Positions 10,318-40,399 of a stretch of 64,000 nucleotides of DNA are shown here, piece after piece (positions within the stretch are counted from its first letter, which is position 1; every line of letters starts with the position of its first letter). Source of the DNA: Hyphochytrium catenoides. Taxonomy: Eukaryota; Protista; Hyphochytriomycota. Position numbers and translations under genes: made by a program. The notes beneath the pieces were generated by a model. It searched no databases and was not told the origin of the DNA. It saw nothing but the letters and a program-made list of their open reading frames with translations. The stretch covers positions 1-64,000 of the forward strand of contig FLMG01002562.1 in NCBI GenBank assembly GCA_900088475.1, in the 5' to 3' direction.

Positions 10318-13300
10318 ATGGCTACGACGGTTTCCAACCCTTCTAGCGGGATGGCAGCGAACTTGCTGTTCCTCGTTCTTGTCCTTCTCTTGTCAAATGG
10401 TTTGCTAATCCCAGCCATAGGTAAGCACCTTAGCTCCTTCACTTCGGTCCTGCGCTAGTTGGACTACAGGTGTCAATTCCTTACGTCAAACCTTTTCTTA
10501 GCAGGTGTAACCGCGGAGGTCACTCTTCAAGTACCGGAGACTCAGTGGCGGTCCTATATCACTGGCTCCCCTGCAGTCTCAGTTTCTCCTTCCTTGAACG
10601 TGACCGCAGCACAAGGGACGACACTTTTTGGGGCCGTAGTCTTCATAGAGTCCTCAGATGGGACAGAGAAGCCTGCTGGGGAGCTGCTGGAGCTCCTCCT
10701 CCCTCAATCCAGCGCCATGAGCGCCATTTTCTATACCTCAAACTCTTCCCTCGTCATTAGTGGTCAGGAGAGCACGGAAGTCTACAAGAAATATCTGAGG
10801 AACGTGACTTACTACTGCGCGGCCCGTGTAGAGCAGAGCCCACTTCTGCGCCGTGACATCGTCTTCCGTCTCTGGCAATCACCGTCCACAGCTAAGCGAA
10901 GTATAGCGCTGTATGGTTCCGGTAAAGCGCTTTCTCGCAAACTCTGCCTCCCTTAACCTTTCACAAGTTCTGGACAGCTGCCCCTTGTTGTTCTGACTTT
11001 CCCATTCTTTGCCTTGATTATCGAGGGAATGCGTTAGTGCTGAGTGTCTGACTCTTTCTTTCTTCACCGACATTGTCCAGGGAATGCTCTACTGCTGAGT
11101 AATCAGACAGTGTCTTCGGGGTCGTCCTTGACCTACACTGAGAATGAACCACCTCTCATGCCGTGGAGCTCGCTGGAACTTTCAAGTTATGCCGCCGAGA
11201 CAATTAGAGAGATTACCGTGCAGATTATGTCCAGTTGTGTCCAAGAGGCAGACGGCCTTCAACTTACCTCTGACTTTATGGGTAGCGCACGGTGGGAGAT
11301 TTCCAACTGCTCGCTCTCCATTACTCCGACAGCCTCTGCTCCCGGGGCACTCAGCTCTAGCAATGCACAGTCAACTCTGCGAGGACTGGTCTTTGTAAGC
11401 TTCCGTCCTGCTGCAACTTTCTCTTTGCTCAGCCGGAAACTCCGCCTCGTCATCTCGTATCAAGGTGTAAATGGCGTCGACCGTTTGAAAGAGGAGAGGC
11501 AGCTCGACTTTTTCCTAGTGCGAGGTAAGCCAATGGTCTTCCCGGCTGAGGAAGGAGTGTTGACCAAGAGTCCGTTCTCTCTCAATCCCCTGTCTCTCCT
11601 AACTTCCCGACCTGACGTTGCCTGTCCCCTCCACTGCAGCGACTGTGGTTGGTCTGAAATTTCTTACCCCAATGGCATCATCAACGTTTCGGGTCGGCCA
11701 ACCTTTCAACCTCACCCTCGCAGCGGTGGATCTTAAAGAGCAAGTCGTGAAGAGCTTCACTGAAGAAAGAGAAACGACTATTACGGGGGTTCTTGGGAAT
11801 GTCTCTCTACTTCGGACCATCGTCCCTGGACCCATAATTCGCTTTCCGTTTTCCGAAGGGTTAATGCATATTCCTGACATGTTCTTTAGCAGTGATGGAG
11901 ATAATGTTTCAGTGCGGGCAAGCTCTGCCGGCTTGAATCTGTCTACTTCACTTATTATACAGAAAGTGGAACGGGTTTCCCTGCAGTCTATAGACGCAGC
12001 GGTTAAATTTCCTTTTTGGGGGGCAGCGAGTCCAGCTAGGATCAACTTCACCTTTCCTGGTCATCTCTCAGACAACATTGTGCTGCAAGTTCGCTTGCCA
12101 GGCGTACTTTTCTCTGGAGAAGTCTCATTGACAGGTTTTCCCCAGGCCTCATACCTGCAGAATGCGACTGCCGCCAGTGATGAGCGTGTTTTACTAGCTA
12201 CCGCTAGCTCCGGCTTCGCATATTCCGCCCAAACTCTGAGTATACTGATTGAAACATTGCACCTTGGTACTCCAGTCGGAGGCAACGGTCACTATGAGGG
12301 AACTCTTGCATTGTTCTCGAGTGATCGGAGACCTGTCGCTGACGGTACCTTCGCGATAGAGACGTCCAGTCTCTCCATTTCACTTATCTATCGCAGCCAG
12401 GATAACAGTAAGCCTTTAGCTACCACAGGTGGTGAGAGCGTCATCCTGTTGCCCTCGCCACTACTCACTAAAGATGGCTACGGGGACATGATACATTATA
12501 TGGTACGCTACGGGCCCAGCACCCAAGCAGTTGGCAACATATCCAGCCTTTGGCCCTTCCAAGCTAGAGACTGCTTGGTAGCTGAAGGGACCGGTCTCTT
12601 TTGTACCACGGCGCCAGGAGTAGGTTCCTCCTTATATTGGACGCTTACCATTGACGGCTCCAATGCGTGGACGGAGCCCTTCCAAGCTTTACAGTACGCG
12701 GCCCCGGTCCTCGACGCATTGCACTTTCCTGACCCCGAGAGAAGCCACTTTGCCCTGAGTCCCATGGGTGGAGAGATTGTCAATCTTCGAGGAAGCGGCT
12801 TTGGGCCACGTGAGTACACGGGCGTTAGCAGTACCAGGGTGGGAGCTTTCTACTCAGAGGATGGCAGTCTTAGCGGCTTGAACGATGTCCCGATTTACTA
12901 CGCGGACTGCACTGTGCAATCTGATGTAGAGATGCAGTGCATAACAGCGCCAGGAGTGGGGACCAACTTATCGTGGATTGTAGCTGTGGGTGGGCAGAAC
13001 AGCTCTGTAGTGAGAAATGCTGCCGGCTATGCCAAGCCAGTTATCTGGAGCATCATTCCCTATCTTTTAAAGACCGAAGGTGGAGATGAGGTTATTATCA
13101 TAGGGGACAACTTCGGGCCAACTAATACTTCCAACGTCATCACGGCTGCGTACTATAACCTAGATATCTCCATCATGTACCCGGCTGGCCACACCTATGT
13201 CCTCGGACCAGTAACAGGCTGTGAAGACACAGCCTCTTGCGACCGTGACCGGTGTCGAGTGGTGATCCCGAACACGCACGTACTCTGCAGGTCAGCGCCT

Positions 13301-16300
13301 GGGGTTGGTTTGAACCAGACGTGGCGGCTGACGGTCGGCAACCAAAATTCATTCAACCACAGCAACCTCGTCAATACTTCGTACCTTCAGCCTGTCATCA
13401 CCGGTATTTCCCCGGACCCGCAAGGCTCGTTGCCTCCTCCACGGGCTCTTAAGACCACAGGGGGAGATCTCGTGTATCTTCATATGGATAACCTAGGCAA
13501 CCCAGGAGCGCTCAGTATGCCGTACGGCCTCACAGGCGAGATGAGCACCGTCAATCCTAGGAATGGCGAGACTGTACGAGTATCCCTGTCTGGGGCATGC
13601 AATGTCTCAGTTCCTTACGAACGCGTGGTCTGCAGAGTTCCACCCGGAGTGGGCATGAATCAAGTGTGGAAGATAGGGCTTATTGGCGGGCATGCCACAC
13701 CGGACTGGTCCACGGCTAACACGTCCTATCAGCCACCAGTCATCAGCAGCATTACGGCCTCAGCGAACCCTTTGTCTTCATTTGGCGGCGACAATGTCAC
13801 TGTGAATGGATACGGCTTTGGCCCTACTGACCAACAGAGCTCTGTAGCTCTATTTTGCAGTCCAGCGCAAGGACACGGTCCAGCAGAGGCCATCTTCACT
13901 TCGCCCTGTACTGTCATCAATAGCGACAAGACGCTGCTGTGCAAAGCTGCGGGCGGTCTGGGTCACCAGCTAAGGTGCCGGGTGGACGTCGGTGGACAGA
14001 CGTCAAACATGATTGACACCTCTCTCTCTTACTGCGACCCCGAGATCACGGGGCTCTCAACCACCCTACTGGAAACCAAGGGCGGATCTATTACGGTGTA
14101 TGGGAAACACTTTGGTTCGCATCCGGAACTCCTGAACTTTACATTCAGAAACCCTTTAGGTGCAAACCTGAGCGGGCGACTCTATCAACTACATTGCACT
14201 GGAACAGACGGCGTCTCCACCGCATCAATTGCTGAATGTTTTTATGGCCCTGGAGTGGGCATAGGTCACATATGGAGCTCTACCGTAGGCAATATCATCT
14301 CGACGTTCACATCTCTAATCTCTTCCTTCAAGCGTCCAGAAATTTTAGCGCTGCGAGAAGCAGGAGGAGGTATGTATTTTGACCCCATGGGGGGAACGGT
14401 CGATGTTGTTCTTGTGGACGGTGGGCCTCCCATCCAGGATAACGTTATTTTTCTGGAGTATGGCCGCCAGGACCTTACTGGACTGGCTCGCGGCCCTTTC
14501 ACTGTCTCCTCGTGCTGGTTTATCCCTGAGGCTATTCGTTGCAGTTATCCTGCAGGCGTGGGGTCTGGTCACACCTGGAGAGTTAATGTTGGGGGACAAT
14601 GGAGTACAAGCACAAATACCATCTCTACCAGCTACTACAGTCCTCTGGTAAACAACATACTCAACAGCACAATGAGCCCTCAAGGAGGATCAGAGGTGAT
14701 GCTGGAAGGTTACTATTTTGGCCCTGTTCAGAGCGATAACACGGTTTCTGCATATCTCATCAACAGCTTCGGCCAGCAGTACACAGCCACAAATTGTAGA
14801 GTCACCAGCCAAGACAACTACAACCACGGCATCATTTCTTGTAGAGCCCCCGCGGGTATCGGGACATTTTGCTACTGGTACGTCATGGTAGGCGGTCAGC
14901 TTAGTTGGAGTTCGGTATGGAATAAATACGCGGCACCACGCATCACGTCGATACAACCCAAATCGGGCCTTTCCGCGGAGGGTGCGAGAATCACCATCAG
15001 GGGTGAAGCCTTTGGTCTCCGTTCCATTATAGCACAAGCTACAGCCTCCCAGCCAACGTCTGGCTTGGCTGCCACTCTGGGAAACCGCTACCGCAGCAAC
15101 AAGACTGAGCTGCATATTACCATGTACAATTGCAACGTCACCGTAGACGATGTTGAGGCTGTTTGCGAGGTGAAAGGCGTTGGAAGGAATGTACCACTTG
15201 TTCTCTCCTTAGCAGACAATGATGACGATAGTCAAGGCGGTTTAGTCAGCTTCATTTCTCCAACCTTCGCTTCCTGGTCCTATTCTGGAGCGTTCCCTAC
15301 AAGTGGCCTTCGAGGCGCTTTTATTGTCACAGGAACGGGTTTTGGTAGCTCTTTTGATGGATCCTTCGATGCGCTTCTCCTGTACTATAAAACAAATACA
15401 CCGCTCTATTACACTTCCACGTGCGACATCTTGTCCTCGACGAAGCTCAGCTGCTCTGCTTCGGAAGGTTATGGTGTCGATTTGGAGTGGCATGTCTTTC
15501 TCAACGGCGAAGAAGTGGTGAAAGGCTCTCTGTGTCCTGTCCCTTGCACTGTCTCTTATAGGCTCCCTTCCGCCATTACTACCAGCCACTCCTCCGCAGG
15601 TAGTATACCGCGTTTCGCTGCATCGGGCGACGTCGTGTACATATACGGAAACAACCTCCCACCCTCTGGGGTCGTGCCGCTGCAATACAATAACTCTGCT
15701 CACTCCGGCTTGGGAGGGTCACCATTCTTCCCGTGGTGCTATGTTACGAGTTTCACAACTGCCTTGTATTGCAGCATTCCCTCAGGTGTAGGCGTGAATC
15801 AGTCTTGGTACATGGACCATGGCAACCTTCTGATCCCCTTGGGATCACTGGTGACGAGTTATGAAGTGCCACAAATCTACTCCTTCGACTCTCAGATGCA
15901 GCATCAGTTGTCAACTGCAGGTTCGCCACTTACTATTAGCGGTTCCGGTTTCGGGCCACCGGACCCCAATAACACCGTGCAGGGCTTATTCTATAGTAAC
16001 TCTACATCTTTGCCCATAGCGCGGATGGTACGGAATGCAAGTTGCAATGTCCTCTCTTCTTGGGTGATGGTGTGTCATGCAAGCCCAGGAGTAGGACGAG
16101 ATATGTCGTGGACCGTAAATGTTGGAGGACAATGGTCGCCGCTGTCGCCAATGAACACCTCATACGGACCTCCTCGTATTTTAAGTATTGACGGCGCCAC
16201 CGCCCTTAAAACACAAGGAAATGAAACGGTGACCCTGTACGGCCTTAACTTTGGCCCTGCTGAGCCTGGCAATGTTGTCACTGCCACTTATGTGAACATG

Positions 16301-19300
16301 GCCCTCAACGGCATGGCTGGAAGACTGTACAGTGCTGTGAACTGCACTGTGACGGTAGATCACACAATAATGCTTTGTAGAACTGTCCCAGGGGTTGGGA
16401 CGGGGCAACGGTGGACTGTCACGGTAGGTGAACAAGCTGGTCCTCAATCAGAAGCATATTCTTCATATGCACCTCCATACATTGAGGCTGTGAGAGCGAC
16501 AGCGGGTTTGGCCACTTTAGGCGGCAGCCGAATAACGATTTATGGGACTAACTTTGGGCCTGTCGAGAGGGAGAACTGGATCACTGCCTGGGTTCGGTCA
16601 CCCTCTAAGACCTTTGGCACTTCCAACTGCTCCCTAATTGTTGCAAGCTCGAGAATAGAGTGTACCACTAATCCTGGGTGCGGAGGTAATCTCACATGGA
16701 CCGTAGTCGTAGGCGGTCAAGAGAGCCCGCCAGCTAGTTCTAACGTAAGTTACGAGAAGCCTTTGCTGACGGCCATTTCTGAAATAAACTACGCAGCCGA
16801 TACGCCTCTCAACGTCTCCCTCACTGGCCAAAATTTCTACTATGACACTTCGGAGGTGTCCGTGCTAGTAGTAGACTCAGCAGGGCTGAGAACGTCTGCC
16901 AAGATTCTCGACACGAGCGATTCGCACATCAGCATAACCTTCCCACCCTCCTCACCTGGTCCTAAAGAGCTTTTCGTACGCGTCAGTAATCAGGAGAGTG
17001 CTCGCCTATCGGTGTCTGTCTATGCGTTAGAGTCGATGATACCGTCGGTGGGTCCGCTTAGGGGTAATACAACCCTTCTTGTCACAGGTAGGGGCTTCAA
17101 TACGTCTGGAATCGTAAGGTTAGATATGGAGCCAGATGGGGCGACAGGCAGTATGTTGACTATGAACGGCAAAGTGGCAAACAGTACGACCTGTGTATTC
17201 TTTACTCCGGTCCTCACCAGTGCGCGATCGTACCGAGTACTCTTCACACTAAACGGCAAGACTCGATCGGTAGCAGGTACATTTCAATTCTACGCCCCTC
17301 CGCAGCTACACTCTGTCTTCCCTGTCAGTGCCTTAGTTGCTGGTGGCAGCTCAATAAAGATTTCCACCGGGAGCCCTCTTCCTGCCACTGGTTACGCATC
17401 CGTAGTATTTGGTGAGTCAACTGCAGAAAGTCGCGCCGCTTGCACAGCACCAAAGCAAGGCAGCAATGAGGTCACCTGCCAGACTACCTCTCGAAACGGT
17501 TGGGCCCATGTACAAGCTTTCCTAACAGTGGACAACCCAGACTTTAATGCTGTGCAGGACTTCGTCCACGCCGACAATGTCACTTTCCGCTTCCTTAACC
17601 CTCCATTGGGAGGAGTACTGAACAGCGGCGGTGACGATGTGGTTAGGCTCAGTCTCATCCTTATCGGTGTTTCCCCTGCTAACTTTAGTCGTTCTGCGGT
17701 TGCGGCACTCATTGAGGTGCTGGTGGATACAATCAATGGTAACGTGCCGGACAGTCATCTTAACCTAACAACCAGCGACATCTTTTTAGAAGGGATTGAT
17801 TCAATCTCGGACAATCAGCTATCAGCCGCGAGGAGGTTGTCCGCCAGCGCCCCTCAGTCTCGAGTACTACTAAGTGTCAATGGCACCAAAACTTCTAAGA
17901 CTGCTCTGCTGGAAAGCATAGAAGCCAGTGCGGCTTCTTACTTAGTCTCTTCTTTGAATATGGCTGGCCTGGCGGTGGAGGGCGTGGAAAACATCCAAAC
18001 ACTTCCCAGCGTCCCTACGATCTCTCCTAGCTGGGGCACAGCTCTGGGGGGAACTAAGCTCGTAATCCGAGGCCCCAACCTGGTGTCCGACGGAACTGTC
18101 AATGTCATTAAAGTTAAGTTTCAGCTTGGTCCAAGCGTTTCTGTGGCCACTGACGGAACCTTTGAACTTCAAGACGGAGAGGTAGTGATCACTTGCACTA
18201 CACCTGACCTAAACGGGCTTGCCATGACAGAGATCACACCCATCTTTGTGGCACTTAATGGACAGGACTACGGAAACTTGGCTGTTCCCTTCGTATTCTT
18301 TACGGTTCAGCGCGTATACCAGCAGCATTATAGCGGCAATGGAAGTGTTATACTGAGTCCTGAGCGTGGCGGTGCTCTCACTTACGTTGAAGGACGCAAC
18401 TTCATTCAGGCGACGTCGCTCACGTCCTGGACGGTGAGAGACTCCAGTACGGGCCTTTTCTTCTTTCCTCGCTATCAGACCTGGGAACTGAACAAAACTC
18501 CTGTCAGTTCACTCTTTGTCAACATCAGTATTTCTTTTATAAACCAAACGACTCTCTCGTTCCGCACGGTGCCAGTTAACAGTCCGCTCGCCGCCGGAAC
18601 GCTCTATGAAAACTACACGATGCTGCTGGCGATAGATGGCAGTGGTAGGCCCTTGTTGCCCAGGGAGCCTGTCGCTTTGATCTATTATGGTATGTCGTAG
18701 GCTCTGGTTTAGTGTTCGCCTGCAGTCTCTCTTCACTGCTTTGTGTTCCTCATATCAATTTCTTTGTGTGAGAGCTAACCCCATGATTCTGTCCCTCGCC
18801 CTTCTGCACTTGATGGATGCTAGCCGCGCCCGTTATTTCCTCAATCTCCCCATTAAGTGGGCCGGTCACGGGAGGAACCTCTGTCACTGTTGCCGGACAA
18901 TTCTTTCGCAGCGGGCGCATGAAGGCGCGGATTGACGGGACAGAGTTTCCCTGTGACATACAGGCAAGCCCAGATTCACCCACCAGTTATCTGGTGTCCT
19001 CTCTCCGTTGCGAAGTGGCAGACTTGAGGTTTCCACTCCGCTTTAATGTGCTGCCGGAGAGATTTTCCTTTGGCATATCAGTGGACAACCTCGACCTGAG
19101 CAGTCAGGAGTTCTATGATAGCGATTCCACATATGTAGTGTACGGTATGTGTCTAGTACTGATGGCATCACATAGTCTGATTAGCTTACTGTTTGTTGCT
19201 TGCTGTTCTCTATTAACTTCGTTACGTATTAGACGTGCCGCAACTTAAGACAGGCTTTCCCTCGCTGGGCCTGATGGCTGGCGGAACTCTATACTCTATA

Positions 19301-22300
19301 TATGGGACCGGACTGCATGTGATCTGGCAGTATGGAAGCAGCCTAGACGTACAATGTAAATTCGGAGCAACTGTGGCGCCTGCTTCGTATCTAGAGACGC
19401 CATTGAAAGGTCAGCAACGCTGGCGTCTTCCTTTTCGTAGTGTGGATTTCCCTCATTGTCATGTCTCATTTGGCCTTGAACTGATGTTAATGTAAAGCGG
19501 TCGTGCTGCTGTACAGCTTTATGGACTTCCAACTGACTCTCTTACCTTGAAGACCAATGGCTCGAGATCCTAAATCCAACTGCCGAAGACCATAGTGACG
19601 TCTTGATTTCGGCTACAGTGGATGCAACCGACTGGGGAGATGCTTGTGAAACAGTGCGGCTCTTGGTGGTAGACCCCCTCCAGTCTTCTTACGTTAGCTA
19701 TTGGCTAGAGACAGATGGATGTGCTCTGGGTATCGGTAGGAGAGATGACCGAAATAGTCGATCGGGCTAAGCATTTCTGACCTGCTATGCTAACCCTTCC
19801 TTCATTTCTGTTTCCATCTAATTCCATGTAGCCATGCTATGGATCCAGGTCCCACTTCTACGAGCAGCTTCCATAACGGAACTGCATCTTATTTCCACTG
19901 ATGATAACACTTTTAAGGTGGTCTCAAGTGCCCTCTGTGGGCCTAAACAGCCTCTTATAGTTCTTTGCTGTCTGTCCTACTTACCCTTTTATTGCCTTCG
20001 TGGACCTCTTTTGAAGGACATCCCGCTTTGTTCTACATCCTTGAATCTACAGGCTTGTTACTTACCACCAACCTGCGTTTACCTCTAGCTCCAAACCGCG
20101 GGCTGGGATATCGCCCTGCCGAGGGCTTCCGCCGTCTTTGATGTTTTTGACACATTTGAGCTCGCTGATGCTTTCCGCTGGGTGTATGCGCCCGCGTACC
20201 TGCTAGCAGACCCGCTAGTATCTAGTGGCATGCTCACTTTCTCTATGACAAGCACGGAGAAGAATTACATCCGTAGCGTTGACAAGCTTCAGGGATCAGT
20301 GCAGATTGAGCTTAGTGTGAAGGCGGAGGTAAGCTGCATATGCATGACCTTGTTCTGTCTTCCATGATATCGCTCAGGCTGCCACATCTCACGCGCGACT
20401 TTCATCTTTTAATACACAGGATGGCTGCCATCAGCCTACTATCTATCTATCTTCTCGAGAAACGGACTTGGCCTCCTCATCTTCCTTTGGGTTTGCTCTT
20501 CAGCATACATGCGGTTCCCTCTGCTTTTTCTCTCGGGGTTTGACTGAGCCTTCCTGCTCAACGTGCACCATCCTAAGCGGCGGTGATTTGCGCATATCCA
20601 TGGTCATCACTAGCGAGAAAGTTACGGCGCATCTTTCCTCATACAATCCTTATTCCATTTGCCAAGAAGACAGTGTCTTTTCTTTCTCTTTACCCTCTTC
20701 TCTTAACCTCACCTCTCAGTACCTATTCATTGGCCATAAACCGGGCACAATTCCATCCAAAGTCAGCCTCAATTGGTTCGGCCTCAGCAGGCATTATAAC
20801 TCTGACTTAAAGGTGAGTGCATAGAGAGAATCGAAACCGCTCAGCGGCTCACCAGTAAATGATATGCAGGTTTCCGTTCTTCCTCGAGAGCCTTCTAGCT
20901 CCATGCTTTTCTGCCCCACGCCGCCACGCCAGAATGACGAGGTCGTAAGCGTGAGTCTCGCAATCAACGGACAGCAGTTTCACATGGTTGCAGGCGGCAG
21001 CTACAGGGGACTCAATCTCTCCCTCTGTCCATCACAACGTGTCTCGACCGCGTACGACATTGGATCCTCCTTTGAACTTGGTAGGTGCTACGGAAGAATT
21101 TTATGATTGGCACATCCTTAATTCCTTTTGCTAGAGCTCTGTGGTGGGAACCTACCGTCGCTTCTGAGTGGCGCTCGCGTATGGCTGGAGGGATCACCTC
21201 GACAGGCAACGGTGCCTGTCACACGTTCCCCTTTACCTGCTAGATCGGTCCATGGCACCTTTCCTTTGCGCTTAAACAAATTGACAGAGCGGGACGAGGA
21301 TGATAGCGCCTCTTTAAAGTTCACCTTTAATAACGGACAAGAGTGGGTCAGTGGGAATCCCCCGGCAGTTGCATTGTACGAGAAGAATGAGCTGTGCGAG
21401 ATGGTGGCCGACCATTTTGACTTCTTGCAAAGGTTAGCGGTTTCTGCTACCTTCGTCCCATAATTTTCTCCGTCCTATAACTTTCTCCGTCCTTGACTGC
21501 TTCGAACCCCCATCTTGTCATCTTTTCGCTTGTGCTGGGTTTACCTTCGTGTGTTTGTCATGTAACCATCCTTTTTGGCAAATTTCCGTTGCTTGTGGCT
21601 GTCCCTCTACACATTCTCGTCCTTTCGTCTTTCTCTCTCTCATCAATGACCGTGTATCTTAGCGGGTTGGGCCCTGATGGTCTGAGAGGCTTCCATGCTG
21701 GACAATGGGTGGGCCCACCCACCAACGGGGAGGTCGCCTCCGCGTGTACGGAGGCCACTCTTGCAAACCTTGAAGGAGGGTTGCATTCCCAAAGTCTGGT
21801 CTTCAGTGGTGTCGGGGAGCGCAAAGTGCAGACAAGATACATCGACACCCGCCTCGCAGCAGCGGGAGGGGGAGGAATTACCTTTTCCTTCCGCTTTGGC
21901 ACGCGCTCTGACACCCTCTTGTGTGGAGAATGGAGCGGGCAGCTCCTTAATCTTGTACACCCTCTCCTTCTTCAGGTGGGTTTGACGAACTGGCTGTAGA
22001 TCGCCACCTAATCGCAATAATAGCATGTACAAGAAGCGCTCTATCTCCCCGCTATCTTAATTCCTTCTAATCACCACGTCTTCTTACTGCAAGCTCTTTC
22101 GGTTTCCTATGCTGACTCGCTTGACAAGTCGTAATTCCGATATTGCTGCTGCGTTCTTACTTACTCATGCACTCGCTTTGTCGATGAAAGGCCTCCATTG
22201 ATGAGGGTCAGTCCTGGATCGTTTTGGATTCCATTCCTCCGACTACCATGAACTTCAGATGGACAGAGAGGAGCGTGGTGCTGAATTTGGGAGCGGCATC

Positions 22301-31300: not shown

Positions 31301-34300
31301 CTGACAATCAAGGGGTCAGCACTATCTCGGCTGGGGTCATGTGCTCTTTACCCGTCGTGTTATCGGCGATTGGACCTGGAGAGCTGAGAGGGAAGACAAC
31401 AAAAGTTATGAGCAAGGGCGTGGCCAATTTCAAGGTGAGAACACCCGTAGCAAGATAAGGAGAAGAGTCGTTATGCTGCAGCTTCCCGGTCCACCTAGTA
31501 CACCAAGAGTGGGTCATTCAATGCGGCTTTCCAATACCCGTCATAGTTGCTTCTCTACTCTCTTCCTATCGTGGTGTTTCTCTCGTGACGACCCTACTCA
31601 CTTTCCACTCACCAAGTTGACCATTTTTGTAAGGGCAGTCTGTAGCGTCCTTTATTTCGTCTGCCGGTGATAGTTCATGCTTCCCCAGAGTTCTGTTCTT
31701 TCCAAAAGTTCTGGTTGGTCATTACCACTTACCACACGCACACGAACAGAAGTGCAAGCTCGCCCTTACCGCCCCAGGCAAATATATCTTGGTGGCTCGA
31801 GTGGATGCTGCAGAGCTCTCTCCTGACCATTGGCTGAACAAGATGAACGTCCACTCAAAGCCGTTCGTCGTAGGAGGTTTGACAATTCCATGCACGACTT
31901 CGTCTTTAATCCACCATCGTCACCGAATCCCTACTTTTTGCCTTCATTTTGCAGAGGAGGTGCCTTTCACCTCAACGGGTAGAAAAGCTTCCATGTTCAC
32001 GAGAAAGAGGTTTAGCGTCTCCCTTCCCAAAGACGCAACATTGGAGGTCCCTCCAAGACGTCTTCCTATTCTTTCCCAATCCAAGGAAAGTGTGATCCAC
32101 TACCCAAATGGAGCCATTGCTATCCGAACAGTAGTGCAGAAGGTCATGGACGATGCCCTCTGGGTTGCTAGAACCTTTGATGGAGAACCTGTGGAGGGCC
32201 TTGCTGTGTTCAAGGTAAGGACATGGTCAGGATCGAACCGTTGTGACAATTAGGGTTGGAGGTATAGATGAGGAAGAGTAACAGCATGTTCAGGTCCGAG
32301 ATCACTTCACGGTCTCCCGTTTTGCCCAAGACAAGCACGGAGCCTGCCGCTGGAGTGTCAACATTTCGACTCGAGAGCCCTTTGGAGAGGTTGATAACCT
32401 TGATCTCAGAGTAGATGGTACAGAGCTACGAGGGCCAGGAAATGCGATAAGGTAAAAACGAAATATCCAGATAGTTTACTTCCTAAACCCCACTTTATGT
32501 GACGCCCTCATCACTCTCTCTTAGTGTGGAGCTCGTTTCATCTTCCCATAGTGCCCAGTATCGCAATGATCGGCTCATTGAGCAGCTGCGGCTTGGAGAG
32601 CAGCAGATCGCAGAGAATGATATTTCAGATTTCCGTACGTAACTCTTGCCAAGTCTCCATCGTTTACGCTTGGGTAGCTGTAGGGTAGCGATCTCTATTT
32701 GCTGTTAGTGGCAATTAACTCAGTCGTGGGTCTTTTCTGTTTGCCTGGTATGAACATGGTGACAGTCCTTGGTACCCACTGAGTAGGGATGTGACAGTCA
32801 CCGCTTTTCCTGTCCTTCTGTGGTTGCTTACATCCCTTCGCATACTTGATAGAGATCGCGATGCGGGTCTTTAGAGTATCCGTCCCCCGAGGTCTGCTCT
32901 GTCTCCTCCTACTATTCACGAAGTGGCCGGCGATCTTCCTGGCGTGCTTCCTGATGGTGTTCTCGCTCTCGCTCATCATATTCGTCTCAACGGTGTGGGA
33001 CGTCTTCCGGCTCTTCACGCAAAGCTTTGTTCCTGCCGAGAAGGAGCACAGAAGCTCGACTTTTGCCATCAAGGTCATACGCACTTCCTTTCGCACTGAT
33101 AACTCCTTTGGTTGTTGCTTTAGCTCTGTCTTTAGTTGTCTTTGGTCAATTTTAGTGCCAGCCCCCGGCCAAAGCTCGCAACTGGTGCTGTCTCCTGAAT
33201 AATCCTTGTTGTCATGGCCTATGGCTAATACCAACCGTCACTCCATTCACACGGCCCTTTGTCCTATGGTTGTTTTGGTCATTCCTGAACTTTCAACCAG
33301 GATGCCCTATCCCATGAGGTCTTCCATCGCTCATGGTATCATAGTAAGAGGACCAGGCAGCCAGGGACTACGACGGAAAGTGAAGAAAAGGATGATGGAA
33401 TAGAGGACCAGGGGGGCCAGCACACAAAGGCCACTAGAGTAGCGCCAATGGAACGCAAGGCCCCCTTTGGCAAAGGTAAACTTTCAGCTCAGCATCAGGA
33501 ACGTTAGGCTCCAACTCCCCTCTGGGTACACGGCTCATCAGCCTTAAGGACTTGAATTTGTGTTATGGAGTTTTCCTTTTTTAATTGCTGCAATTCAGGC
33601 TGTTCGATTGTTGGCACCTGGTTAGGCTGATCAAGGGATTGTTTCATCGGTGGACCTCTTCTTTCTCCTTTGAGCGCACTTGTTTTCGCCATATCCGACC
33701 TCGTGTGTCCTCTCTCCAAGGCATAGGCGGTCGTCAGGGCAACGTGAGTCGGAAGCTCTCCTCCGTCCTTCGACAGAAGTCTGTCAAGGACGTGGACAGC
33801 GTACTACAAGACGCTCGTCTAAAGAGCGCGTTTGGCTCCTCGTGGCTTTATGAAGAAGACCTGCAGACTTCATTGTTGCTCTATCTTTTAACGAGACAGG
33901 ATATTCAGCATGTTCTGGACTTCCATAGAAGTCTCTCTGCCCAGGTCAGGGAGACGACAGAGACAGAGAGAAGCGCTAAAGAGTTGATAGGGTGCATGGT
34001 TGATTCAGCCGCTTCCTCTGCGCCTGTTGTATCTTCTTGCTTTTTCTACTCTAAAGCCGACCTCTTCATAGGTAGAAGACTCTTATTTCGCTAATAAGGA
34101 CAAGATAGAGGGTCGGGACCAACGAGCTGCGGAACTCTTCAAAGGGTTTTTGCAAAAGCAAAACTTTCGGACTTTGAACCCTCTCAAGAGGTTTCAAAGC
34201 CCAGAAGGACCGGAAAGGGGCGAGACGACGAAAGTAAAGGAGGGAATCATGGTAGATCAAGCAAGGGTGGACAGTCTGCAAAGAGACTTCGTCCAGCGGT

Positions 34301-37300
34301 ATGACGACTTCAGGCGCATTGGACTCAAGAACGAGCAGCCGGTACGTTCAGCGCAGCCTTTCTTCGTCTTTACCGCACTGATTGACTATTCCACCTACTT
34401 CCACCAAGTAAGAAGTCTGAGCAGTTACTCATCCCTAATCTACTGCCATGCTCTCTTATGTCCCTAGTCCTTGCGTATCGTAGAGGCAACGGCTCTGAAC
34501 TGTGACTACATCGCCCATGGAACCCAGATTGTCAAGAGCCAGGATGTGCGGGCCAACAATGCACCGGAGGATGTCATGGATTACTTCCCACTTTTCGTTG
34601 AAAGCGAGGATTGGAAACAGGAGAAGGATCTTTCTGTCTTCGGGGGCACTTTAGAGTATGACACGTATGCAGACAAGTACGTTGTGGGCTTTATCATCAT
34701 TCTCTCCTTTTCTCACGTGGTCCTCTGTGGAAAAATTGTGGAGCTTTTCAACTGTATGACGCAGACCTCCACGGGAAAGACTATCCTCAGCGCTAATCCG
34801 GAGATTGGTGAGCACTCCTCCCCGATGCCTTTGCATGTTCGTCTTCTTGCATTTTTTTCTTCACTGCTACTAGGTCTGTTCGCACCCCGGACCGCGCATC
34901 CTTACTCATATCACTCTTCTTCGCCAAAACATGTGACCTTGTGTTTTGAGCTGCTCTTCATCGCTGTTGTAGCGATTTAGCTATTTTCGTTGGGTTTGCG
35001 TTTAATCATCATCGACAATGTCTGCCATCTAGTATGTTGGGAATCCGAGCACTGGAGGCTCATCTGGCCCGGAGTCATCTTTACCTTCGTGTGGGCACTG
35101 GGAATTCCAGTAACACTGTTGGGACTGGTCTATGTCAATGTCATCCTTCCCAACAAGCGCCACTGCAGGCAGGAGAAGGCACGATACGGGTACCTCTTCC
35201 TCCGGTACACCAACAAAGCCTGGTGGTGGGAAGGGATGCTCATGTCAAGGAAGTTCTTCGTGACGGTTTTTCGCATGTTGACGAGCAACGGGCAGAAGCT
35301 AGTACAAGCAAGGTAAGTTGAATTAAGAGGTCTTTAAAACCGAGAAGGAGAAGAAAGAGCACCAATTGTCCCGCTGACTTGTACGCTCCACTTATCCCGG
35401 TCTTTGCTGCGCTGGCAGTGGCGGATTCTTCTTCTTTCTGTTTCTGTGGTTTATGCAGATGCTCTTCAACCCTTACATCGAGCTTTCCCTCAATCGGCTC
35501 GACGCCGTGGCCCTGACTTCTCACGTCTTTGTCATGTACGCCGGAGCGATCTTCCTGACAAACAAGCTCTCCACAGCCCTCACCACCCTCTACGCTATAC
35601 TCGTTGTTCTTGTTAACTTCTTCGTCTTCGTTTGGATGTTCGGGTAAGTAACATTGTACCAATAGGAAAAAGGCAATGGTAAATTTTGCAATACCGCGCT
35701 TGGGGATGAGAAAGATATCATAGATAGAAGGACGTTTGATAGCGCGGACCATTAGTTCAGCAATGACAGGGACACTAACGCCTCTATTCCCCGCTTCTCC
35801 GCGCTCTATTGTTTATTCTGTTGTCTCCAAAACCTGTCTTGACGTTTCCTGTCGCCTCCTCTGCCACTCATCAATGGCTTCACCTATCAACACCTCAATG
35901 GCTCACCTTTATGACCCTTTACGATAAGTGCCGTCGTCACCGAAGTTTGCGAGCAGATTCCTGCCGTCTCCTACATGATCCAGGGAGAGTTTTGGATTGA
36001 CTACCTATACCCCACGTTCCTAGCCCACGTCGAAATGACTTTCTTTGGAGCTAGAGCGAAAGCAAAGTACGACAGGATCTTGAAGAGACTAAGTAAGGAT
36101 AACATGGCCTCGCAGGACGGGAGGCTGGATAATTTCTTTTCTAATCACCATTTCCTGTTTGCTTTGTTACCAAGCCGATTCTGCACACTGCTGCGCCGTC
36201 TTTAATACCGTCCTTGCGCTGAATCGCTGCTTTCTCATGTCTTTCTTCGATCGCTGTCTTCAGTGGACTATCTCCAACCTTCTTCGGAGGTTGTTAAGCG
36301 CGCAGAGCTGACTCGCCGGCTGAAACAAACTCATGTCTTCAGTCCGGAGGGTATATTCTGGGCGAACTACTGGATGAGGGATATGGGAACCTCGATGAGG
36401 GAGGGCGAGAGCTATGTACGTCTCTTTGAGGACTATATGGTGGTGATGGATAGAGTCAGCTTTGATCAATTCATCCAATATAACTGGAAAGACCCCAAGG
36501 CTAGATTGACAAAGGCAGAGGTAAGCCTTTGCACTGCATTACTATAGATTATCGTCGTGTTCCCCTCGTGTATCTCTCATGACACAGTCTTTGGCTCCAT
36601 TAGACCAAAAGTTGACCGTGATCGCAGCTAGCATTGGTTGTAACGAAGGAAAGAGATTATCTCAGGGGGACCTCGTTCCCTACCGTCTGACTCACATCGC
36701 GCATGGTTCTTCTCTGCGCTTGGCTTTGCTTTCAACTCTGTTGCATCTTAGGAGGAGCTATGGATGTTGGCCATGGCTCGAGCACTACGAGTAATGTCTC
36801 ACCATGAGGGACGGGTTTTCGAATTTACTGAGAACGAGGGTATCTACTACTCCGCAGGGAGTACTCTCTTGGAGGCAGCTTTGCCCAACCACTTCCTCTA
36901 CGTTGATGTGGAGAAGAGCGGAACTTTCCTGCCCGCTGAGGTACTAGCACTTCTTCTGGCGGCCTAGGGTTTCCTTCGGTCCGGTCTTGGCTCTTCTTTC
37001 CTTCACGTTCCTCTTTCCGTACACTCCTAACTTTGGGTATCAGAATGAGTTACTACTTTTTGGCGCTTATTGATAGCTACCCTTCCTACCATCGCCTTTC
37101 AGATCGAGGAAATTATATCAGACCACACTTTCCGCGTGTCCCTTGGGGAGGACGCAAGGATAGAGTACGAGGATATGACTTCGTCTTCCTCCTGTCCCGA
37201 TTCTTTCCTTGTTGATTCCGCATACATCAAAGTTTACTCGAGGATCGAGGTCAAGCAGGTCTGACACTTGGCCACTGTCCGCTTGCTTATTGCCCACCTA

Positions 37301-40300
37301 TCATTACTTAATTGTCTTCTTTCTTCTTTCCTTCTTCTCTTTGGTATCAATCTCTTCTTTCGATGCTGGTGCTTGGTATCCTTCATGAGTCCTTGTCTTT
37401 CCTTGTCGTGTTAGCTTCCAATGTCTCCGCCGATGAACAAGCTTTCGACAGTCAAGACCTTTTTACTTTTTTGTTCTGTCCTCAGATACTACATGACGTA
37501 CACAATCTTAACCCGTTGGCTGGTCTTTCCGCGTGGTGTCTGTATCCCAATTTAGGTGGATGGCTCTTGGTGGCCTGGGAAAGTCTTTAGGGTTAATAAC
37601 GGTGCACCAATCACCTACGATGCTCGCTTTGACAATGGGATACTGCAGCGGTAAGCTCCGATCTTCCGATGGGCACTATTTTCTTTTCAACTCGGCCTTC
37701 ACCCCACCTTTCTTCAGCCCTTTCCTTCCAGTCCTACTCGCTTCTGGCTACTTCATTTATCTGTGTTGTTCTCTGCTCACTGCTTTTAGCCCGACGTTCA
37801 ATTGGATCTCCATGGCTCACTCCTGCCTATTACAGAGAGATATCGCGTGACCGTATACGACGATTTGGCAGCGCGGAGTTCACTGATTCTGGCCTTGATG
37901 TTCCCGTGGTGACCGCCTGGACCAGAAACTTGTCAGGGGAGTCGGAAGAGGAGTTGACAGAGTACCGGAGGACCGATGTCTCCAATAAAGTCGTCGAAGA
38001 GGGTGAAGAGGTGCTGGTTACGCAGATCGAGTGGCATCTCTCTCGGAAAATTACGGCTCCTATTACCGTGGGAGGTGCCGGAGATAGCTCCTGGCTCTTA
38101 ACAGGTGAGTCCGTGCTGCGAGCGAAAAGGCTGAGAAGAGAGTGAGAGCAGTAAGCCAGAGCCAAGGAGAGAGTAAAGAGACAGTAAAAGGGACGCGAAG
38201 CGGGATACTAAATTGTATATCAGACATTCCCCATCGCTCTCTCACTTCTCCTATCCTTTCTCTCTGCATGAATCCTCCTTACCAGCTTTTGCGGACGGAT
38301 CGTGCGACGTTTGGACTGTGATTCGCAACGAGCATGTGCACCGTCTGATGCATGGAGAGATCATTCGCTTCATTTTCCTCTCGCCTGACGGCAGTTACGC
38401 GATTACATTCTCCGAAAAAGACGCAGTTATCTGGCATGTTCCCGAGGACAGCGAAGATAAGCCTCGAAGGATCTGTGCTGGGTGTGAGGGATGTCCCGGT
38501 GTTCGAGTTAGTGCACACAACGTAAGCAGTGGGTGCGTGGGGTGCCCATCCTGCTGCAGCGGATGCCTAGAGAAGCCGCTGAAGGCAGTGTCGCAGGATG
38601 CAGGTAGTCGTCGTTTTACTGAACCAGAAAGAAACCCTTCTCTGTCGTAGTAAAGGGATTTGCTCCTCCTTCTGGTTATTACCATGTGTAGGAGTTGTCC
38701 AGGTGCGTGAGTCTTCCCATCTCTTCCCTCGCTCAATGCTGCTGGATGAGAAGACGGGGGAGTGGGTTCCTTATGTCGAAAGACGTATACTTGCGGTTGC
38801 AGCTTCCCAGCATCATCTGCATGGGAACCACGACGTCGCCAGCACAGATCCAACACAGGTACGAAATAGACCACGCACTGCTGCCTACTTCCTTCGTCCA
38901 GGCCTTTCTAGGCTCTGATCCGTGTGCCGATACCCTTTCTACCTGTCTGTATAGGCTTCAATTATCATTAGCACGGCTGAGTATCTAGAGCTGCTTTTGA
39001 TTGACTGGAAGCGTGGCATAGTGCCAGGCAGGCAGTGGTCTCGAAGAGTCTTAGGAGGACGAAGGGCTGTTCAGGCACGATTTCAACATGGAGTCGGCGG
39101 AAAGTGCTTTAGTGCGGAAACACCCTCCGTTCTGCTGGTGGCCACTGATTTGGAGGTGAGGACGGAAGAACCGTCGTTGAGTTGATATCATCGGAGGACA
39201 TTGAACAGCCACCTCGGAGGACATTGAACAGCCACTATGATGAGGCTGAGCTTTCAACCGCAGTCCCTTGAACGGCTGAACTTCCTTCAAATGATGGGGC
39301 CGGGTCGGGCCTTGCGGACAGATGCTAAAGAGAGGCATAGAGTGCATTTACGTTCAGTCAGCTCATCGAACTCTCTCCAATCCAATCCCAGGTCTTCCTC
39401 ATGAAGTGCGAGACCGACATCCGCGGCCCAGCCCATCTCGGACTGCAGATTATGCAGCGTTTTACGTTCCCTGCTTCATCTCCTTCATCATTCTGCTTTA
39501 TGTCAGGAGAGAGAATCGTCGCAATATCTCCATGTTCCGACAGCCCAAGCTCGCTGATCACTAGCACAGTGACGACAGTAGAGTCTACGTCTGCCGACAG
39601 CAAAGGCAAAGGTTTGGAAGTCACGGTAAGAATTAAATACGTCTATCAGCTTCTCTGCGGGGGCTTAGCTCCCTCTTCCGTCCAATCTGGAATGCATTGT
39701 CCTAATGTGTTGGCTGTGCTGACCCTGCTTTCGCTAGTTGACCTTAGAGGGCCAGAACCTCTTGATGCCAGCTGGCCAACCTTGGTCATCTCCTGGCTTT
39801 CAGGCAGTTCTCGGCTGCGTCCTTCACGACAGCCGCGGCTCCTTTGTCAAGCAGCGGAAGGGCAGTGCGCAGAAGCTTGGTCAAGGCTCGATGTGGGAAG
39901 AGCTGTGCAGTTCCGTTTGGTTCAAGAGGATGATGATCTGGCTGAAAGACGTCAAAGATGGGGAGATCTCACAGGTGAATAGCAAAACACTTCCCTCAAT
40001 TTCTTTCTCTTTTGATTTCTACTGTCTCTCTCTCTCTCCATTTGCTAACCACTATCCTTCATCTTCTTGCTTCCTGCCCCAAAGACTACTCTTGCTCCGG
40101 AGGACTTTTCTTCTCAGTACTTATTAGCTATCTCGGGACGAACCTGAAGCTTAACCCTCCCACACCAACATGGCGCTTCCTTTCTCTTGCATCTATCTTA
40201 GGACACTCACTTCACGTCAAGCTCAACGCTGAGCCAGGCACTGAGAAGACAAGACGAGAATCACCGTCTGAAAATGCAGAAATTGACTGACAATATAGAA

Positions 40301-40399
40301 CATCAGCATCGCATTGAACAGCTCGTGCAGGAAATGCTGTGTGAAGAGCTCGAAAACGAACTCATGAGAGGGGTTGCCGAAGAGTTGCTTGCTCTCTAG
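10318..40399 (+). CDS. Giant (~7,400 aa, ~48 exons) IPT/TIG-repeat, multi-pass membrane receptor/TRP-like protein with RING, Tudor-like and WD40-like modules
   Basis: ATG at 10318 with a signal peptide (MAANLLFLVLVLLLSNGLLIPAI|G). Phase-compatible GT-AG junctions can be traced by hand through all + strand ORFs: exon 1 10318-10420, exon 2 10505-10921, exon 3 11081-11524, exon 4 11640-18689, and so on to the last exon 40202-40399 ending ...RGVAEELLAL*. The summed exon length is ~22.4 kb. The Cys-rich juxtamembrane region (CAKGYAGYLCASCEQGYY..CKECP) and TM motifs (INWP, YGYLFLRY...WWWE..RK, NPY...NRLD) are typical of protist TRP-like / 'GPCR-related' multi-TM proteins. Confidence 0.75.
12390..16760 (+). 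repeat. 14 tandem ~105-aa IPT/TIG-like coding repeats (GGxxxxxxGxNFGP...C...C...PGVG....W.V.VGGQ.S...SY..P)
   Basis: Counted motifs in ORF 11618..18700: TAPGVG, TAPGVG, SAPGVG, VPPGVG, AAGGLG, YGPGVG, YPAGVG, APAGIG, VKGVG, ASEGYG, IPSGVG, ASPGVG, TVPGVG, TNPGCG. Confidence 0.8.
39191..39235. repeat. Perfect 22-bp tandem duplication inside an intron
   Basis: TCGGAGGACATTGAACAGCCAC at 39191-39212 and 39214-39235. Confidence 0.9.

Follow-up and report, generated by a model that had tools for sequence, protein, structure and literature searches.

Gene model and collinear relatives

The forward strand of the window, by which is meant the whole 64,000-nucleotide stretch analysed (Hyphochytrium catenoides contig FLMG01002562.1, positions 1 to 64,000), carries one stop-free chain of exons from 10318 to 40399, which opens with an ATG at 10318 and closes with a TAG at 40397-40399. 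The chain was obtained by an exon-chaining DP that was self-trained and weighs a 3-periodic Markov coding model against an intron model. A first pass gave 45 exons and 7,238 amino acids. After intron length had been capped at 400 nt and two junctions had been set by homology, the final model comprises 48 exons separated by 47 GT-AG introns of 57-345 nt, with a 22,188-nt coding sequence for 7,395 amino acids; within this model, the precise gene ends are tentative, as are the exons at 32452-33475 and at 37259-37835. Three related loci were found to be collinear with approximately 12.0-39.95 kb of the window, two of them on metagenome contigs (L001 and L002) and the third in Chrysoparadoxa australica (L003, on CAXMZZ020000049.1). 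The features of the coding region are as follows.

10318-40399, forward strand: whole coding region (DP model; collinear with the spliced L001 ORF over amino acids 456-7182)
10318-10420, forward strand: exon 1, with the start codon and a signal peptide whose hydrophobic core spans amino acids 16-34 (predicted start)
10505-11524, forward strand: exons 2-3, two N-terminal units of unassigned fold (sequence)
11640-18644, forward strand: exon 4 (7,005 nt), IPT/TIG array (PF01833, E=1.5e-45; collinear with L001 g1)
12455-16774, forward strand: 14 tandem Cys-IPT repeats of 88-116 amino acids each, amino acids 594-2033 (iterative HMM)
18824-21432, forward strand: exons 5-12, more IPT/TIG domains and unassigned ectodomain modules (Pfam TIG)
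21663-22456, forward strand: exons 13-14, Reelin subrepeat-B domain (PF21471)
22529-24770, forward strand: exons 15-16, IPT domains into which a conserved domain bearing a DYRYQ..Y.W motif is inserted (homology, TIG)
24938-26125, forward strand: exons 17-19 (first part), Cys-rich repeats of the ephrin-receptor-like type next to the membrane, DUF7631 and DUF7630 (Pfam)
26126-26459, forward strand: first helix block, TM1, TM2 and TM3 (alignment, hydropathy)
26678-34407, forward strand: exons 20-33, insert of about 1,850 amino acids between the helix blocks (collinear with L001 g2/g3 and L002 g1/g2)
26743-26862, forward strand: RING-HC-like finger directly 3' of TM3 (C-x5-C ... C-x-H-x2-C-x2-C ... 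C-x2-C)
34528-35643, forward strand: exons 34-36, second helix block of five or six helices (best conserved part; alignment)
35929-36520, forward strand: exons 37-38, conserved helical cytoplasmic region with a GTSMREGE.Y.R motif (alignments A2 and A3)
37836-39974, forward strand: exons 42-47, beta-rich cytoplasmic region, possibly a beta-propeller (collinear with L001 g3 922-1458 and the C-terminal end of L002 g2)
40202-40399, forward strand: exon 48, acidic helical tail and TAG stop (DP model alone)

The best chain scored 1,630 on the forward strand; the minus strand reached 379 and a shuffled copy 74. In the 45-exon model the coding score was positive for every exon. The great length of the gene, together with the exons that are not fixed, could be taken to indicate a decaying or unexpressed pseudogene. 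This is very improbable, however, as the 22-kb frame runs over 48 exons without an internal stop, the splice sites are consensus-like, and the conserved motifs are intact in all blocks. Judged by its sequence, the gene is intact, and its predicted product of about 7,400 amino acids is a multipass membrane protein.

Exon chaining can bridge neighbouring genes, and when given a free start the DP runs slightly beyond both of the proposed gene ends. Furthermore, the NCBI annotation of the Chrysoparadoxa locus holds, in the 22 kb viewed, only fragments of 413 and 637 amino acids. These observations would suit an arrangement of two or more adjacent independent genes, such as a TIG receptor followed by a RING/beta-propeller protein. 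The collinear loci argue against such an arrangement. Once two small GT-AG introns are taken out, L001 reads open over 8,003 codons, and a single L002 ORF of 3,088 amino acids covers window positions 32282-38473; L002 ends a few residues past a motif that aligns with window 39882-39950. The break in L002 is bridged by L001 g2, the break in L001 is bridged by L002 g2, and at the position of the first L001 intron, exon 15 of the window reads unbroken. The gaps between the called ORFs in the relatives measure only 6-86 nt, which leaves no room for promoters or UTRs; two of them hold GT-AG introns (88 and 78 nt) and the third consists of two in-frame stops. From 12.0 to 39.95 kb, no candidate boundary is left that an uninterrupted ORF of L001 or L002 does not span. 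Wherever one locus has a boundary, the coding sequence of another reads through it, and on this decisive evidence the interval 10318-40399 very probably has a single-gene architecture and separate genes are extremely improbable.

This agrees with the original prediction, which had joined the open reading frames into one 30-kb gene running from a signal peptide to the TAG at 40399, with approximately 47 introns, and had proposed a search for orthologues in related protists. Of the two junctions that it singled out, 26459|26678 (donor GTATGA, acceptor AG) was placed exactly: in the homologous proteins P0001 and P0003, the stretch LY..EC..W..V.AAPCPNS reads across the position of the junction, and TM3 continues into the RING within one polypeptide. 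The second junction likewise exists, being crossed by the 3,088-residue ORF of L002, but its donor (G|GTAAGT) had been placed one base off, at 35644, and the junction is 35643|35929.

P0001 and P0003 were found by searching representative proteins with exon 20. A third protein from that search, P0002, is a spurious match, as it is a tandem-repeat protein aligned over 20 short stretches. Profile searches with TM1-3, with the C-terminal helix block and with the TM1-3 region of P0004 returned only further fragments of the same family (P0004 and P0005), and three profiles run against viral and metagenome contigs gave no match. The predicted layout is conserved in at least four stramenopile-type genomes.

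A long ectodomain of IPT/TIG and Cys-rich modules

The ectodomain comprises about 4,390 amino acids, or about 60% of the protein, in line with the predicted 4,400. Pfam matches, collinearity and hydropathy also recover the predicted order of domains, in which a signal peptide is followed by an IPT/TIG array, a reelin-like module, IPT domains with guest domains, ephrin-receptor-like Cys repeats and, finally, the split set of helices. An exception is the two units encoded by exons 2-3, which had been described as cadherin-like. No Pfam family matches these exons at E<=0.1, and so there is no cadherin repeat match to sustain that description.

Exon 4 matches the TIG family PF01833 with 153.5 bits, well above the cut-off of 20.9, and the iterative HMM reproduces exactly the predicted count of 14 Cys-IPT repeats, with domain E-values from 6e-19 to 1.8e-35. 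The IPT/TIG rod as a whole consists of these 14 repeats, which are nearly identical in length, and about ten divergent domains; further TIG matches fall in exon 5 (3.1e-08), exon 6 (6.4e-04) and exon 16 (E=0.0086). The Reelin subrepeat-B match to exon 14 (30.2 bits, E=4.4e-07) lies above the cut-off of 27, and the collinear position in L001 matches the same family with 54.9 bits (E=9.5e-15). Among the juxtamembrane repeats, DUF7630 scores 27.9 bits, just above its cut-off of 27, DUF7631 scores 24.1 bits, below a cut-off of 27, and Ephrin_rec_like in P0003 reaches 20.1 bits, below a cut-off of 23.1.

With adhesion-type modules (TIG, Reelin-B and Cys-rich repeats) making up about 60% of its length, the protein could have a chiefly structural role as a surface adhesin or in the cell coat, its membrane and cytoplasmic parts serving for anchoring and for the control of trafficking and turnover, the latter through self-ubiquitination by the RING. 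Yet conservation between species is highest in the helix blocks and the adjoining cytoplasmic region: identity to L001 and L002 is 45-62% in the second helix block, whereas identity to the relatives is about 26% in the rod. Such conservation of the helices is unexpected for a mere anchor, for which a single helix would be enough, and a mainly structural role is therefore unlikely.

Helix blocks, the insert with a RING-like finger and the cytoplasmic region

In line with the predicted split, the helices fall into two blocks that are separated by a large insert and collinear in the relatives. In an alignment of four sequences (A7), the first block has 38 invariant columns, among them the motifs GLGSPRI and NID..H.ECE. 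In the window, the hydrophobicity of its TM2 candidate is weak, and an outward-facing RING would result if this segment did not cross the membrane.

The RING-like finger falls just below the cut-off for zf-C3HC4_3 (26.4 bits versus 27). The window, P0001 and P0003 each have the full set of eight zinc ligands, while in P0004 they are clear up to the sixth only. The first ligand pair is unusual, with a C-x5-C spacing (C-x4-C in P0004) in place of the canonical C-x2-C, and sequence searches of the PDB gave weak similarity to the MAT1 RING and nothing else. The ubiquitination and scaffolding outputs proposed for the protein may be entertained from this RING-like Cys/His pattern only. Besides the RING-like finger, the insert, which is predicted to be largely cytoplasmic, contains several long hydrophobic segments, as judged by hydropathy, and soluble domains that have no Pfam match. 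A Tudor-like module had also been predicted, but no profile for a Tudor or SH3-like barrel matched exons 20-25, P0001, P0003, L001 g3 or L002 g2, and this assignment is not retained.

The second helix block resembles, below threshold, the last part of the 'TRP-like' domain of PF06011, the Pfam 'TRP' family that we take to be the one holding the fungal Pkd2 and Flc proteins. The homologous stretches of L001 (3.1e-04), L002 (3.5e-04) and P0005 (0.09) all match the profile, always at positions 272-400/426. These matches score 12-20 bits, below the curated cut-off of 28.5, and span the last three helices only. The nearest ESM Atlas clusters are also PF06011 (0.94, 0.93 and 0.91, with 199-209 of 256 features shared), and the structural neighbours of one of these look-alike clusters include an 818-residue cluster of Ephrin_rec_like and TRP composition. 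The AlphaFold model of the block has a pLDDT of 51, which is too poor for use. PF06011 has no match on the split exons of the window or on the first helix block, and it is for the latter reason that we infer, rather than observe, the two blocks to be halves of one domain. The word-indexed searches with TM1-3 and the helix block likewise yielded no contiguous PF06011 proteins. In Pfam scans of the window's exons and the contiguous homologues, PKD_channel, PLAT, REJ, GAIN/GPS and 7TM_2 were absent. The earlier description of the protein as polycystin/adhesion-receptor-like thus holds in a narrow sense, through the sub-threshold likeness of the C-terminal block to PF06011, and fails in its wider one, as there is no match to animal PKD proteins or adhesion GPCRs.

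Beyond the second block, exons 37-38 share 44% identity with L001 g3 (tblastn). The beta-rich region further downstream had been called WD40-like and is a tentative beta-propeller. No WD40 family in Pfam matches the window's exons, and a search of the C-terminal 2,900 amino acids gave no internal repeats. What points to a propeller is a weak match of Beta-prop_NWD2_C to L001 g3 (E=0.046), a set of weak ESM Atlas look-alikes that all belong to propeller families (0.78-0.81), and an AlphaFold model that is beta-rich but poor (pLDDT 47).

Possible function and relation to known receptors

Together, these features raise the possibility that the protein is an adhesion or force sensor at the cell surface, a mechanism that, taken as a whole, we regard as plausible though somewhat short of probable. 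The protein would be located in the plasma membrane, or in a flagellar or other surface domain, where its long rod would bind the substrate, the cell wall or another cell. A pull on the rod, or the binding of a ligand, would then be relayed to the TRP-like helix bundle by the stalk, which is rigid and rich in Cys, while the cytoplasmic RING and C-terminal domain would recruit E2 enzymes or partners, leading to receptor turnover or downstream signalling. A precedent for the membrane step is S. pombe Pkd2, in which a 'TRP-like' membrane domain is associated with calcium permeability activated by membrane stretch (PMC9727806, PMC6727746); the cytoplasmic tail of Pkd2 includes a coiled coil (PMC6727746).

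The protein resembles members of the PF06011 family (S. pombe Pkd2, S. cerevisiae Flc1-3 and protist proteins of Ephrin_rec_like and TRP composition) in having a signal peptide, an extracellular domain, a multi-helix module and a cytoplasmic tail. It differs from them in several respects. It is about ten times longer, and its profile scores lie below the family cut-off. Its ectodomain has about 4,400 amino acids of TIG and other modules where the PF06011 proteins have an ML-like domain or a few Cys repeats, and its helix domain appears to be interrupted by an insert of 1,850-2,900 amino acids with a RING. A more specific proposal would be an undescribed class of stramenopile receptor, in which a PF06011-like core is split between helices 3 and 4 by this insert and the whole forms a self-contained mechanosensor. 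The insert would be conserved and cytoplasmic, with a RING E3 finger and membrane-dipping hairpins, so that one polypeptide would combine a ubiquitin ligase and a force-gated calcium pathway with a rod of about 25 Ig-like domains that reaches far out from the membrane. In this complete form the proposal is doubtful. In our literature searches, no paper describing the family was found, which is consistent with the earlier remark that no described protein has this combination.

The helix bundle of the same single gene might instead act not as a channel but as an anchor or assembly platform, in the manner of the apicomplexan CRMPs (CRMPA/CRMPB and PfCRMP1-4), with the rod sensing contact and the cytoplasmic insert and tail bringing about exocytosis or a cytoskeletal change. 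The CRMPs are large proteins with long insertions, some having been predicted as two fragments, and carry Cys-rich repeats of the ephrin-receptor-like/EGF-like type before a core of nine transmembrane domains (PMC9815656); they act in a membrane complex and in regulated secretion that is triggered on contact. In the present protein, Cys-rich repeats directly precede TM1, the helix count is about 3 + 6, and channel activity for the family is only inferred. This likeness, however, is one of described architecture, and both the Pfam matches and the feature look-alikes favour PF06011, for one member of which calcium permeability has been shown. The TIG array, Reelin-B domain and RING present here are unreported in CRMPs, and the lineage and cell biology differ. 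We know of no CRMPs with TIG arrays or RING fingers, nor, to our knowledge, do stramenopiles have rhoptries, which counts further against this reading. A CRMP-like platform is hence rather unlikely.

A further comparison is offered by fibrocystin (PKHD1) and PKHD1L1, membrane proteins linked to sensing, whose very long ectodomains consist mostly of IPT/TIG domains and have other modules inserted among them. Fibrocystin carries G8/PbH1 modules, and its one transmembrane helix is followed by a short tail. The multi-helix core and RING found here are both missing from it, and the only relation in sequence that was noted lies in the TIG domains.

If the proposed sensor is correct, free-living stramenopiles would have cell-surface sensing wired very differently from that of animals, with one chain that joins a rod of tens of Ig-like domains directly to a TRP-like module and a RING finger. 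The protein would then be a conserved and concrete candidate for a contact or force sensor in a group from which no receptor of this kind is known. It would also show that a membrane domain can, in nature, accommodate about 2,000 inserted residues. Since standard annotation misses or fragments such genes, as the Chrysoparadoxa locus illustrates, giant receptor families of protists are likely to be undercounted.

Gene model and homologous loci

The window has about 50% G+C and T/C-rich GT-AG introns, and is by this composition eukaryotic. On its forward strand, dozens of stop-free pieces, one of them 2,365 codons long, lie between 10.3 and 40.4 kb. These were joined by a custom exon-chaining program, which sets a 3-periodic Markov model of coding sequence against a model of introns and uses iteratively trained splice-site weight matrices, into a single stop-free chain from ATG 10318 to TAG 40397-40399. 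The top chain scored 1,630 on the forward strand, compared with scores of 379 for the minus strand and 74 for a shuffled copy. Initially the chain comprised 45 exons (7,238 aa); with introns capped at 400 nt there were 48 exons, and the junctions 27575|27921 and 34807|35033 were set by homology. The final model (48 exons separated by 47 introns, each 57-345 nt long, and a coding sequence of 22,188 nt for 7,395 aa) essentially matches the roughly 47 introns and 7,400 aa of the original prediction. Its parts referred to below are:

10318-40399, forward strand: proposed giant membrane-protein gene
26126-26459, forward strand: first helix block
27148-30735, forward strand: long hydrophobic segments in exons 20-25, within the insert between the helix blocks
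34528-35643, forward strand: second helix block (exons 34-36)
32452-33475 and 37259-37835, forward strand: poorly conserved stretches

No N runs occur inside 10318-40399; three assembly gaps (50402-50441, 56525-56616 and 61315-61350) lie 3' of the gene. The start (exon 1, with the signal peptide), the last exon and a few exons in the two poorly conserved stretches are predicted. At 32795-33199, which is poorly modelled, a second reading frame encodes a very hydrophobic segment (GLLCLLLLFTKWPAIFLACFLMVFSLSLIIFVSTVW); exon chaining took another frame for 32892-33073, and a 179-aa minus-strand ORF in the same stretch (32695-33234) has the appearance of antisense noise.

The continuity of the gene can be judged from homologous loci. 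On the 36.5-kb JGI metagenome contig L001, three ORFs abut on one strand: 3,630 aa (truncated where the locus ends), 2,898 aa and 1,822 aa. The gaps between them hold introns of 88 nt (GTGAGT..CAG) and 78 nt (GTTAGT..CAG), and once these are removed a single frame stays open for 8,003 codons. On a second metagenome contig, L002 (14.4 kb), ORFs of 1,703 and 3,088 aa share one frame, divided only by TGA-TCT-TAA. By tblastn, the L001 ORFs map to window positions 12041-23051, 23352-31122 and 34576-38476, and those of L002 to 24938-29350 and 32282-38473. The three loci break at different positions, and every break is covered in one of the others: window exon 15 bridges the position of the first L001 intron unbroken, both L002 ORFs align to L001 ORF 2, and L002 ORF 2 aligns to L001 ORF 3 together with the end of L001 ORF 2. 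Residues 456-7182 of the window model are collinear with residues 25-7422 of the spliced L001 protein, and the last window exons align weakly, with order kept, to the L001 and L002 tails as far as about 39950. A fourth collinear locus, with introns, is found in the ochrophyte alga Chrysoparadoxa australica (GCA_964200425.2).

Over 12.0-39.95 kb, these collinear loci bear out the original proposal of one gene, which is very probably correct. Separate genes and a pseudogene are both disfavoured as highly improbable.

The interruption in L002 (L002:5112-5120) is the only one in an otherwise open contig. A 24-nt GT..AG stretch (GTGTGATCTTAAGTGATCTTGAAG) would take out both stops in frame; a tiny intron, read-through or an assembly error may each account for the interruption. 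The orthologous giant gene of Chrysoparadoxa (CAXMZZ020000049.1:55448-77698) keeps its collinearity for 16 kb or more and is badly under-annotated: public NCBI annotation holds only a 413-aa partial and a 637-aa protein, with the 10 kb upstream empty.

When exon 20, which carries the RING, was used for an exhaustive HMMER search against 1.84 billion representative proteins, only two true relatives emerged, P0001 (2,898 aa) and P0003 (1,703 aa), which lie on the contigs L001 and L002, respectively. Database relatives are very rare, comprising these two and two fragments, all unnamed. The repeat protein P0002 (1,929 aa), in which a 55-aa unit (MGNKLRTLFHKISKNYPLLH...) recurs about 35 times, gave 20 matches to a short exon 20 stretch and is probably spurious, its match inflated by repeats. 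Since P0001 and P0003 both continue without a break from the third helix to the RING finger, the junction 26459|26678, which had been predicted exactly, is confirmed at the protein level. The junction predicted near 35644 also exists, spanned by L002 ORF 2, but its true position is 35643|35929, one base off; the donor, G|GTAAGT, overlaps an in-frame TAA.

Ectodomain and membrane core

IPT/TIG domains were matched in Pfam at 1.5e-45, and an iterative HMM reproduced the exact count of 14 tandem Cys-IPT repeats originally noted (residues 594-2033). Above their cut-offs of 27 bits were Reelin subrepeat B, with 30.2 bits for exon 14 (9.5e-15 in L001), and DUF7630, with 27.9 bits; DUF7631 and Ephrin_rec_like fell slightly below their cut-offs. 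The N-terminal units described as cadherin-like had no Pfam match. The L001 ectodomain (L001:1-9912) also carries DUF2341 (9.9e-10) and fn3 in a precomputed list; neither matched at E<=0.1 among the scanned window exons, and the decorations of the rod therefore differ between species.

The first helix block, of about three helices, bears invariant GLGSPRI and NID..H.ECE motifs and directly follows the ephrin-receptor-like repeats. Nowhere is the protein better conserved than in the second, of five or six helices, which is 45-62% identical to its counterparts in L001 and L002. On this second block, three contiguous homologues gave independent, sub-threshold matches to the Pfam 'TRP' family PF06011 (3.1e-4, 3.5e-4 and 0.09), all at profile positions 272-400 of 426; the Pfam scan gave no PF06011 match on the first block. 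We take PF06011 to be the family of the fungal Pkd2 and Flc proteins. The ESM Atlas clusters closest to the second block are likewise PF06011 (0.94, 0.93 and 0.91; 199-209 shared features), and 818-aa Ephrin_rec_like+TRP proteins are among the structural neighbours of one such cluster. The AlphaFold model of the helix block was poor (pLDDT 51). Because the first block adjoins the ephrin-receptor-like repeats and the two blocks total about nine helices, we infer that together they form one TRP-like core, into which an insert (about 1,850 aa) has come to lie. Animal PKD, PLAT, REJ, GAIN and 7TM_2 were never matched in any Pfam scan; only in the sense of fungal Pkd2, therefore, can the protein be called 'polycystin/adhesion-GPCR-like'.

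Insert, RING-like finger and tail

The insert measures about 1,850 aa in the window, 2,300 aa in L001 and 2,900 aa in L002. All eight Cys/His ligands of a RING-like finger are present in the window, P0001 and P0003, the first pair spaced C-x5-C; in P0004, a fragment, it can be followed clearly only as far as the sixth ligand. The match to zf-C3HC4_3, at 26.4 bits, is slightly below the cut-off of 27. After the RING, at 27310-27400 (exon 20), lies a second Cys/His knuckle (CAFQGRKFDCRRPQCGSYPYCNKH; weak WRC-like match, E=0.07), which is lineage-specific, as it is missing from P0001 and P0003. The insert, which is presumably cytoplasmic, also has several hydrophobic segments of unusual length (28-47 aa) in exons 20-25. 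Many of them have Pro/Gly at the centre (IPLGVAP, LAPPALL), and by their appearance they are better read as helix pairs or hairpins dipping into the membrane than as single spans.

Two further domain assignments were not supported. The 'Tudor-like' stretch had no Pfam match, and the 'WD40-like' tail gave only one beta-propeller match (E=0.046), feature look-alikes that were all propeller families at scores of only 0.78-0.81, and a beta-rich but unreliable AlphaFold model (pLDDT 47).

Possible function

A literature search found no paper for this architecture, and the protein is provisionally placed among the protist Cys-repeat and TRP-like membrane proteins, as a giant form that carries an insert. 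Fission-yeast Pkd2 combines a signal peptide, an extracellular domain, a membrane domain termed "TRP-like" and a cytoplasmic coiled coil, and its calcium permeability is activated by membrane stretch (PMC6727746, PMC9727806). A close rival to a Pkd2-like role, though the less likely of the two, is a non-channel contact sensor like the apicomplexan CRMPs, which join ephrin-receptor-like/EGF repeats to a nine-helix core with long insertions (PMC9815656); a mainly structural adhesin is less likely again. By analogy with Pkd2, the favoured though tentative reading of the giant protein is a surface adhesion or force sensor, in which the TIG rod would bind something extracellular, load would pass through the Cys-rich stalk to the TRP-like bundle, and the cytoplasmic RING finger and tail would provide turnover or signalling outputs.
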